Shown here: positions 47,601 through 48,372 of the stretch, piece after piece
Position numbering within the stretch: position 1 is the stretch's first letter
How the letters are laid out: every line of letters starts with the position of its first letter
Origin: Pavona decussata
Lineage: Eukaryota
Length of the DNA stretch: 64,000 nt
Direction of reading: 5' to 3'
Assembly (NCBI GenBank): GCA_977016875.1
Contig: CDRNST010000018.1
Coordinates: 372,001 to 436,000 of the forward strand
The notes under the pieces: generated by a model
The model's database searches: none
Seen by the model: only the letters and a program-made list of their open reading frames with translations
What the model was told of the DNA's origin: nothing
Made by a program: the position numbers and the translations under genes

Positions 47601-48372
47601 GCTTAAGTACTTTACTTGGCGTGCCCGAAACGATTTTCGTTTCCGTGGTGTTCGCCATGGTGCGGTCATTGTTATTGAGAATACCAAAGCGAGAGCTAAA
47701 TTCAACCTCCCGTTGTTTTTCAAGCGTTTTCGTTCTTCTCGCCGTCGTCACTTTTATCGCCAGTGGGGAGCCTGCAGTATTGTCGGTTCTGTTGATGGTG
47801 TGTTAAGTCTGGCCCTTTGGTCCCCCTTTTTTCTGCCCTGAGTGAGTGTGTCTTGTCCTGGTCGCCTTAGTTGGTTGTACTGGGCTTGCCCGAGTGTGTG
47901 TGTCTTTTGGATGTCCTTTAGACGGTCGCCTTAATTGATTGTACTGTCCTTGAGTGGGTGTGTATCTTGGATTTGTCATTTAGATGGTCGCCTTTGTTGG
48001 TTGTACTGTCGGACGGTCGCCTTAATTGGTTGGACTGTCTTTTGAGTGGGTGTGTTTTTTGGTCGTGTCGCTTGAGCATGTTTTTGGATGGTCGTCTTTG
48101 TTGGTGGTACTGTCTTTGCTTGAGTGGGTGTGTTTGTTTCTTGTGCCTCCCGCGTTTTAATTTTGTTCTTTTGTCCTGTCTTGTCCTGTTTTTGTTTGTC
48201 TTGTATTGTGTTTGTAGGGAGCGGGGTTCCATCCCCCGGTGACGTTTGACGTGCTGGTGCAACTCCCGTTTAAGGTGAACCCATTGTTGTGTGATGGGCT
48301 AAGTCGTATTTGTCTGGCAGGGATTGCACTCACCCTACCGGGGGCCTGGCCATTCACCTTAAACACGAAAAA
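44681..48372 (+). mobile_element. U1-targeting Tx1 element 1 (type II 5' end); ORF1, APE from 46414, RT deleted at ~47490, 3' UTR intact
   Basis: MALSVLSINCNGLRD, SLYAPN, GLWKLN; short A-tail followed by U1 target duplication. Confidence 0.9.

Follow-up and report, generated by a model that had tools for sequence, protein, structure and literature searches.

A U1-type AUUGCAC module in the 3′ tails of coral Tx1-type LINEs inserted in U1 snRNA genes: a candidate site for host U1A/SNF

One clade of Tx1-type LINEs, whose insertion point in coral U1 snRNA genes is position 2/3, is predicted to present a single-stranded AUUGCAC directly after a G-paired C in the 3′-terminal domain of its RNA. The module comes in two forms, an internal loop and a 10-nt hairpin loop, and both would offer the same determinants to the first RNA recognition motif (RRM1) of the host protein U1A/U2B″/SNF. 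From sequence comparison we put the probability that the module is a site for this host protein, recruited by the element RNA through a mimic of the U1 loop, at about 55%. More tentatively still, the bound protein may aid the nuclear persistence or handling, within the element's particle, of a transcript that has no canonical poly(A) signal; guidance to U1 genes and a block of poly(A) polymerase are not part of the role proposed here.

A coral snRNA array and its U1-inserted LINEs

The window, i.e. the whole stretch of DNA analysed (64 kb), contains two U1, two U2 and two 5S genes according to Rfam, and among named proteins its elements come closest to Tx1 elements from Stylophora pistillata, a stony coral; the window therefore reads as a coral snRNA/5S array full of Tx1-type LINEs. 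U1, U2 and 5S genes occur together in the arrays that host these elements. The features of the Tx1 clade are present, namely an apurinic-type endonuclease, a reverse transcriptase (RT) and a zf-RVT domain in ORF2 and a CCHC motif in ORF1, and the assignment to Tx1 rests on these domains together with the nearest named relatives. One U1 gene is uninserted (24968..25131, + strand); its stem-loop II has a 10-nt loop closed by a C-G pair, with the heptamer ATTGCAC at 25032-25038. U1 5′ stubs lie at 39599, 44666, 48374, 52258 and 60146.

Three of the LINEs, here called A, B and C, stand in tandem on the + strand, with U1 stubs of 12-18 bp between them and the rest of the U1 gene after C. Upstream of A lies a stub of about U1 nt 1-18 (44663..44680, +), homologous to the start of the uninserted gene at 24968. 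Element A (44681..48373, +) is followed by a stub resembling a target-site duplication, CTTACCTGATGCAGG (48374..48388, +), then by element B (48389..52257, +), a second stub (52258..52269, +), element C (52270..60145, +) and the remainder of the target gene from U1 nt 3 (60146..60306, +), whose stem-loop II heptamer is at 60207-60213. At the end of each element, a run of five or six A residues abuts CTTACCTG, the U1 sequence starting at position 3. The insertion point is the same in all U1-flanked copies, with the A run joined to U1 nt 3 and a U1 stub of 12-18 bp duplicated on both sides as a target-site duplication.

All three are decayed copies of the Tx1 type. The broken coding remnant of A (ORF1 and ORF2, 45037..48009, +, outer bounds of the protein matches) retains little of ORF1, with at least one frameshift and two stops, and an ORF2 with at least two frameshifts, one stop and large internal losses. 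The broken ORF1-ORF2 remnant of B (48913..51827, +) has at least two frameshifts and two stops in ORF2; its ORF1 part continues into the RT part of ORF2, so that one internal deletion took out the endonuclease region. Decay has gone furthest in the ORF2 of C (coding remnant with ORF1 at 52715..56482, +, likewise broken), with at least five frameshifts, about ten stops and a displaced last third, and its ORF1 holds three stops. Element C is also interrupted by a nested insertion flanked by 209-bp direct repeats that are 96% identical (56528..58944, +), where the AT skew changes; a 374-aa ORF inside this insertion (57254-58378) gave no match in Pfam. Only the last ~250 nt of DNA can be aligned among all three elements, and the conserved 3′ UTRs lie at 48120..48373 (A), 52001..52257 (B) and 59931..60145 (C), all on the + strand.

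Several further features of the window were recorded. The sense strand of the elements is strongly T-rich at 46000-56000 (AT skew to -0.45), the opposite of the A-rich mammalian L1. The stretch at 39615-44357 has a U1 stub (39599) and a U1-type 5′ end, but a U2 junction (44357) and a U2-type tail at its other end; it is either a chimera or a deletion product between two adjoining insertions. Just 3′ of the U1 gene that follows C lies a tRNA-like gene (60870-60943) that scores 49.6 bits against Rfam tRNA but is given no amino acid by ARAGORN, and further downstream a 705-aa ORF with aspartic protease and RT domains (61269-63386) that is probably an LTR retrotransposon.

Conservation and fold of the heptamer module

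The original prediction, made on the window, held that the 3′ UTRs of A, B and C share a U1A-type ATTGCAC stem-loop shortly before their A tails. Its reading of the letters is accurate: the heptamer lies at 48323-48329, 52207-52213 and 60097-60103, always on the + strand, the quoted strings agree base for base, each copy stands 49-51 nt upstream of a U1 junction, stem-loop II of either U1 body contains the heptamer as well (at 25032 and 60207), and the tails of U2-targeting elements have none. The last observation is a weak control, because the U2-targeting elements are a distant lineage with no more than 21-26% identity at the ORF2 C-terminus. In the window the heptamer occurs 14 times where 9.7 are expected, and the three 3′ UTRs are homologous (83% column identity; 173 of 300 columns invariant); invariance within the window is thus not beyond chance, and an invariant block of 8-9 nt is unremarkable.

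Conservation was therefore followed in about 31 distinct tails of related Tx1-type LINEs from coral contigs, many of them collected via the U1 junction alone; 30 were aligned. An intact relative, L003, encodes an ORF1 of 482 aa and an ORF2 of 1185 aa with endonuclease, RT and zf-RVT domains; its own tail is missing from the counts because its contig breaks within the 3′ UTR. With L003 as query, 120 near-full-length ORF2 relatives were found at 54-73% identity. Ten of these were inspected: seven reside in U1 genes, and all ten tails have the C, the heptamer and the closing G. A search by junction used the A run plus U1 nt 3-14 as pattern, with the heptamer left out of the query, and returned 18 coral-type junctions among 120 loci, with an exact heptamer at 15 and a one-base variant at the other three; most of the 120 loci lay in contigs of microbes or phages, some of them gut-metagenomic, where the 17-mer matches by chance, and were left out. 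Finally, a covariance model (R1), i.e. a search profile of the 65-nt non-coding segment, matched nothing but the three tails in the 64-kb window, and gave 37 matches in the coral loci, 30 of them distinct.

Of the 30 distinct tails, 27 have an exact heptamer and 29 the C before it, which makes this the most conserved block apart from the A run. Position 7 of the heptamer is C in every one of the 30, i.e. of the U1 type and not of the U2 type. Wherever ORF2 is uninterrupted, both the C and the heptamer are exact; the three heptamer variants and the window copy without the preceding C are decayed copies. The module is constant over ORF2 identities of 38-72% (38-57% within the hairpin lineage described below), and also between the internal-loop and hairpin lineages, whose ORF2s share 52-56% identity in their last 270 residues. 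Because the carriers all fall in one clade, the association between the U1 target and the U1-type loop rests on a single evolutionary origin.

Two observations were made at other U1 loci. An insertion in L067 (- strand, junction at oriented position 91) occupies the same U1 position and ends in a C-rich stretch and 22 A residues, with no module in the 91 nt available upstream; it may be another kind of retrocopy that exploits the same nick. A U1 gene variant at about 5288 in L033 (-) and about 4815 in L105 (+) has the stem-loop II heptamer directly joined to the stem-loop III region, which amounts to an internal deletion.

The fold shared by the lineage of the window elements (15 tails) differs from the apical hairpins originally drawn around the heptamer, which are possible pairings in three decayed copies and not a conserved structure: across the 15 tails they are 62.7% paired, and 449 of 500 shuffles score equally well, so the apical hairpin was rejected as a conserved fold. 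Instead, an outer stem forms between the eight bases that precede the heptamer and a strand 12-14 nt beyond it; enclosed are the heptamer, 0-3 more bases and a hairpin of 3-4 bp, which often has a GCAA, GAAA or UUCG loop. Pairing in the outer stem reaches 95%, against 27-56% in slid controls, with compensatory changes at seven of its eight pairs. The heptamer thus occupies the 5′ side of an asymmetric internal loop that a mini-hairpin caps, with the heptamer and 0-3 nt facing 0-1 nt.

In a sister lineage (eight aligned tails) the module is a plain hairpin whose loop is closed by C-G; the stem is 89% paired, with compensatory changes at four of seven pairs. The loop measures 10 nt in seven of the eight aligned tails and 11 in the other, and is also 10 nt in L130 and L139. 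Over both lineages the closing C-G pair is found in 27 of 30 tails and never covaries, in an alignment that was fitted to the model and so leans towards it; the pair is missing from L123, has been lost from copy A of the window and is shifted in copy B. Since the stems include G-U pairs, the structure belongs to the sense RNA strand. The alignment of tails beyond the window, one of the checks originally proposed, thus found heptamer and closing pair fixed and stems covarying with ORF2 identities down to ~40-55%. The claim that the heptamer is looped out is likewise supported: it falls outside the helices supported by covariation and is predicted to be unpaired in most unconstrained folds. As to U1 mimicry, what survives is the placing of the heptamer in the context of a U1A RRM1 site, single-stranded and with the preceding C paired to G; the stems as drawn do not.

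In the window the covariance model scores 73.3 bits for A (48307..48372, +), 66.2 bits for B (52191..52256, +) and 69.9 bits for C (60081..60145, +). The module of A has its heptamer at 48323-48329, the outer stem at 48315-48322/48344-48352 and the inner hairpin at 48333-48342, with a G in place of the C at 48322, where the closing pair is lost. Around the heptamer of B (52207-52213) the outer stem is imperfect (52199-52206/52228-52236) and the inner hairpin lies at 52217-52226; in C (heptamer 60097-60103) the outer stem is at 60089-60096/60117-60125 and a weak inner hairpin at 60106-60115.

The module is itself enclosed by a long-range helix between a segment ~80-100 nt upstream and the bases just before the A run, for which RNAalifold gives nine pairs on the 15 tails, several of them compensatory. 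Its strands lie at 48270-48279/48353-48362 in A (48270..48362, +), 52150-52159/52237-52246 in B and 60066-60074/60127-60135 in C, and the tail of L006 adopts the enclosing fold unaided as its minimum-energy structure (z -3.09).

Further upstream, ~105-175 nt before the A run and in both tail types, stands a T-arm-like hairpin with a 5-bp stem and a 7-nt loop (48222..48238, 52102-52118 and 60018-60034, +; also L004 6805-6821), which has a box-B-like GGTTCGATTCC in intact copies. An Rfam scan of one intact 3′ UTR at a permissive threshold gave no U1-like match, and only a weak match of the T-arm to the tRNA-like mascRNA (E 1.6). The proximal 3′ UTR of both tail types holds two to seven spaced copies of a GGTCGCCTT..TTGG motif, as at L004 6544-6715 (in 51-nt tandem units), L130 5592-5875, in L035, L128 and L131, and in the window at about 47860-48030.

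At the other end of the elements, one class has a splice-donor-like GGTAAGT in the 5′ UTR, 20-45 nt after the U1 stub. This sequence is predicted to pair with the U1 5′ arm (ACTTACC) that insertion leaves upstream, with z -2.1 to -3.1 in three of four cases; the leader hairpins lie at 39596-39650 and 48372-48425 in the window, at L006 6924-6995 and at L067 2040-2100 (-). Elements A and C have a different 5′ end, with a GGCC-GAA-GGCC-like hairpin.

What may read the loop

The positions that follow the heptamer are not read by U1A, and in the tails they vary freely or have a hairpin in their place. What U1A does contact is AUUGCAC and the closing C-G pair, and it binds both the hairpin of U1 stem-loop II and an internal-loop site in its own pre-mRNA (PMC2203988). 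Since the conserved determinants of the module are those that U1A contacts, a site for host U1A/SNF is the best reading of it. The host coral U1 keeps the canonical stem-loop II loop, and its AUUGCAC in a 10-nt loop closed by C-G has the geometry of the hairpin-type tails. The stems of the tails are unrelated to it in sequence, however, the context is a LINE 3′ UTR, and the window lineage has a mini-hairpin in place of three spacer bases. With the heptamer fixed in local alignment, the similarity of most tails to coral U1 ends at the C, the heptamer and 1-3 further bases, beyond which it is at shuffle level, so that only the recognition determinant is held in common; a recent capture of a U1 fragment was rejected on the same alignments. 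The internal-loop tails resemble the site in the U1A pre-mRNA 3′ UTR (PIE), where the heptamer likewise forms one strand of an asymmetric internal loop beside a C-G pair. Unlike PIE, which has two boxes, the tails have one; their upper helix is a capped hairpin of 3-4 bp, and no canonical poly(A) signal lies downstream.

Retroelement RNAs that use a host RNP protein are familiar from Alu, which retains a domain of 7SL that binds SRP9/14. Alu, however, is a non-autonomous derivative of a whole 7SL domain, whereas the coral element is an autonomous LINE with a minimal recognition determinant. Keno and other target-specific LINEs of the Tx1 clade resemble the coral elements in their ORF2 domains (endonuclease, RT, zf-RVT), in the CCHC motif of ORF1 and in their site-specific targeting of a multicopy small-RNA gene, but their listed targets do not include U1 (PMC4494074). 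The tails of stringent-type LINEs such as UnaL2 and ZfL2 also have a conserved stem-loop near the 3′ end in which the loop sequence matters (PMC4176376); their loops are lineage-specific and read by ORF2p, whereas the coral loop has the sequence of a host protein's site and is constant over deep divergence.

These LINE tails suggest the main rival as reader of the coral loop, the element's own protein. An ORF2p-type recognition of the stem-loop near the 3′ end would then start reverse transcription, and the identity with the U1 loop would be an old capture from the target transcript or a coincidence. We regard this as a real possibility, if a doubtful one. The module does sit inside a covarying terminal domain directly before the A run, ORF2p does recognise the loop of the tail hairpin specifically in ZfL2 and UnaL2 (PMC4176376), and a sub-lineage at non-U1 sites retains the module. 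On the other hand, the fixed positions are exactly those that U1A reads and the free ones those that it ignores, and the same heptamer with the same closing pair appears on two different scaffolds. The loop also stays constant over ORF2 divergence to ~40-55% identity, where co-evolving pairs of protein and loop drift, and even related LINEs differ from each other in the loops that their ORF2p reads (PMC4176376). As for ORF1p, a CCHC knuckle is all that it shows, and its sequence matches none of the solved U1A-type RRMs; a U1A-like RRM in ORF1 was rejected after Pfam gave the knuckle only and a search of solved structures gave nucleocapsid knuckles and no U1A, and a single-sequence structure prediction of ORF1p was unusable (mean pLDDT 40.6). 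Several findings were counted against the host-protein reading: the single clade to which all carriers belong, the retention of the module at non-U1 sites, the internal-loop type with its 0-3 extra bases and inserted hairpin, the embedding of the module in a larger covarying 3′ domain of the kind recognised by a LINE's own RT, the module-less L067 insertion at the same U1 site, and L123 without the closing pair. Both host U1A/SNF and the element's own protein may bind.

Recognition of the motif as DNA, as a copy of the U1-gene motif, is far less probable than either protein-RNA reading. It has a precedent in the Dada-U1 DNA transposons, U1-specific mobile elements with the ATTGCAC of their target, whose sub-terminal ATTGCAC/GTGCAAT repeats copy the U1-gene motif and were proposed to serve transposase recognition (PMC3706591), and the heptamer lies 61 bp downstream of the insertion point in U1 and 49-51 bp upstream of it in the element. 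But the Dada-U1 copies are inverted and read as DNA, whereas the coral tails hold a single sense-strand RNA structure: their flanks covary as an RNA helix with G-U pairs that would mismatch on the other strand, the heptamer was found as a 3′ copy with no inverted partner near the 5′ ends, and elements have inserted into stubs without the U1 body and its heptamer. Least credible of all is a neutral relic or chance resemblance. Within the window taken alone, invariance is as expected of homologous tails that are 83% identical; the wider sample speaks against it, with an exact heptamer in 27 of 30 distinct tails over deep divergence, compensatory changes in the stems, an invariant closing pair and ORF2 identities that exclude near-identical recent copies among the external loci. 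A fixed 7-mer equal to the protein-binding loop of the target RNA would be expected by chance about once in 16,000.

Possible roles of a bound protein and implications

The original prediction had suggested 3′-end control or trafficking to U1 loci as the purpose of U1A recruitment. Either purpose, a block of poly(A) polymerase by bound U1A/SNF like that on the U1A pre-mRNA or transport of the particle to U1 loci, now appears unlikely, even though some observations lean that way. Most U1-type tails have no AATAAA and end in a short templated A run, whereas the U2-targeting tails, which are without the module and very unlike one another, each have an AATAAA 20-30 nt before the A run (38960..39244, +; 44070-44357; 23260-23548; L006 740-1010). 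A transcript reading through into the U1 body would acquire a second site ~110 nt downstream, and the joint arrays of U1, U2 and 5S genes would suit homing. PIE-type inhibition of poly(A) polymerase, however, needs two closely spaced U1A molecules, and a search for two heptamer boxes upstream of a poly(A) signal found one module per tail, with most tails lacking AATAAA, so that 3′-end control of the PIE kind loses its footing. Homing is weakened by the tandem arrays, which represent insertion into bare U1 stubs of 12-18 bp, by the U2-targeting elements that live in the same arrays without the module, and by the sub-lineage at non-U1 sites.

This sub-lineage comprises copies with an uninterrupted ORF2, an intact module and non-U1 flanks (modules at L127 5810-5875, L137 6108-6173 and L138 6363-6428). 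The P0124/P0199 family (L127, L137) has a common non-U1 flank near 5S genes, and P0125 (L138) is 5′-truncated within other repeats; both are nested among U1-targeters and are 73-75% identical to P0123. The module is therefore not tied to residence in U1. The proposed check for the motif in relatives with other targets thus had a divided outcome: it is absent from the U2-targeting elements, and its retention at non-U1 sites goes part of the way against the link with U1 targeting as first put. Inhibition of poly(A) polymerase and homing to U1 loci are both unsupported. Sites for U1A in a 3′ UTR can raise transcript levels (PMC9136276), and our best guess is that binding plays a role in the nuclear persistence or handling of the element RNA.

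A more far-reaching version would make host U1A/SNF an obligatory cofactor, with the mimic putting the particle on the maturation route of the U1 snRNP to nuclear sites of U1 arrays. Target choice would then lie partly at the level of RNA or RNP and not with the endonuclease alone, and the leader hairpin of some 5′ UTRs would belong to this disguise; we consider this improbable.

It is established that a LINE's tail is read by its reverse transcriptase and that SINEs copy host RNAs. The literature searched describes neither a U1A-type site in a retrotransposon nor an autonomous LINE that resides in the gene of an RNA and carries just the minimal determinant by which a protein recognises that RNA. 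The closest case is that of Dada-U1, in which a DNA transposon bears this heptamer and it is read as DNA (PMC3706591). The targets listed for the Tx1 clade are U2, U5, 5S, satellites, microsatellites and transposons (PMC4494074), to which U1 genes are now added.

In the coral elements such a determinant has persisted on two different scaffolds while the proteins diverged deeply. Should the host protein bind it, the module would be a clean natural example of mimicry by a retrotransposon RNA and a natural test of what a U1A/SNF site requires, and it would offer a clue to the way in which transcripts without a poly(A) signal are handled by site-specific LINEs of snRNA arrays.
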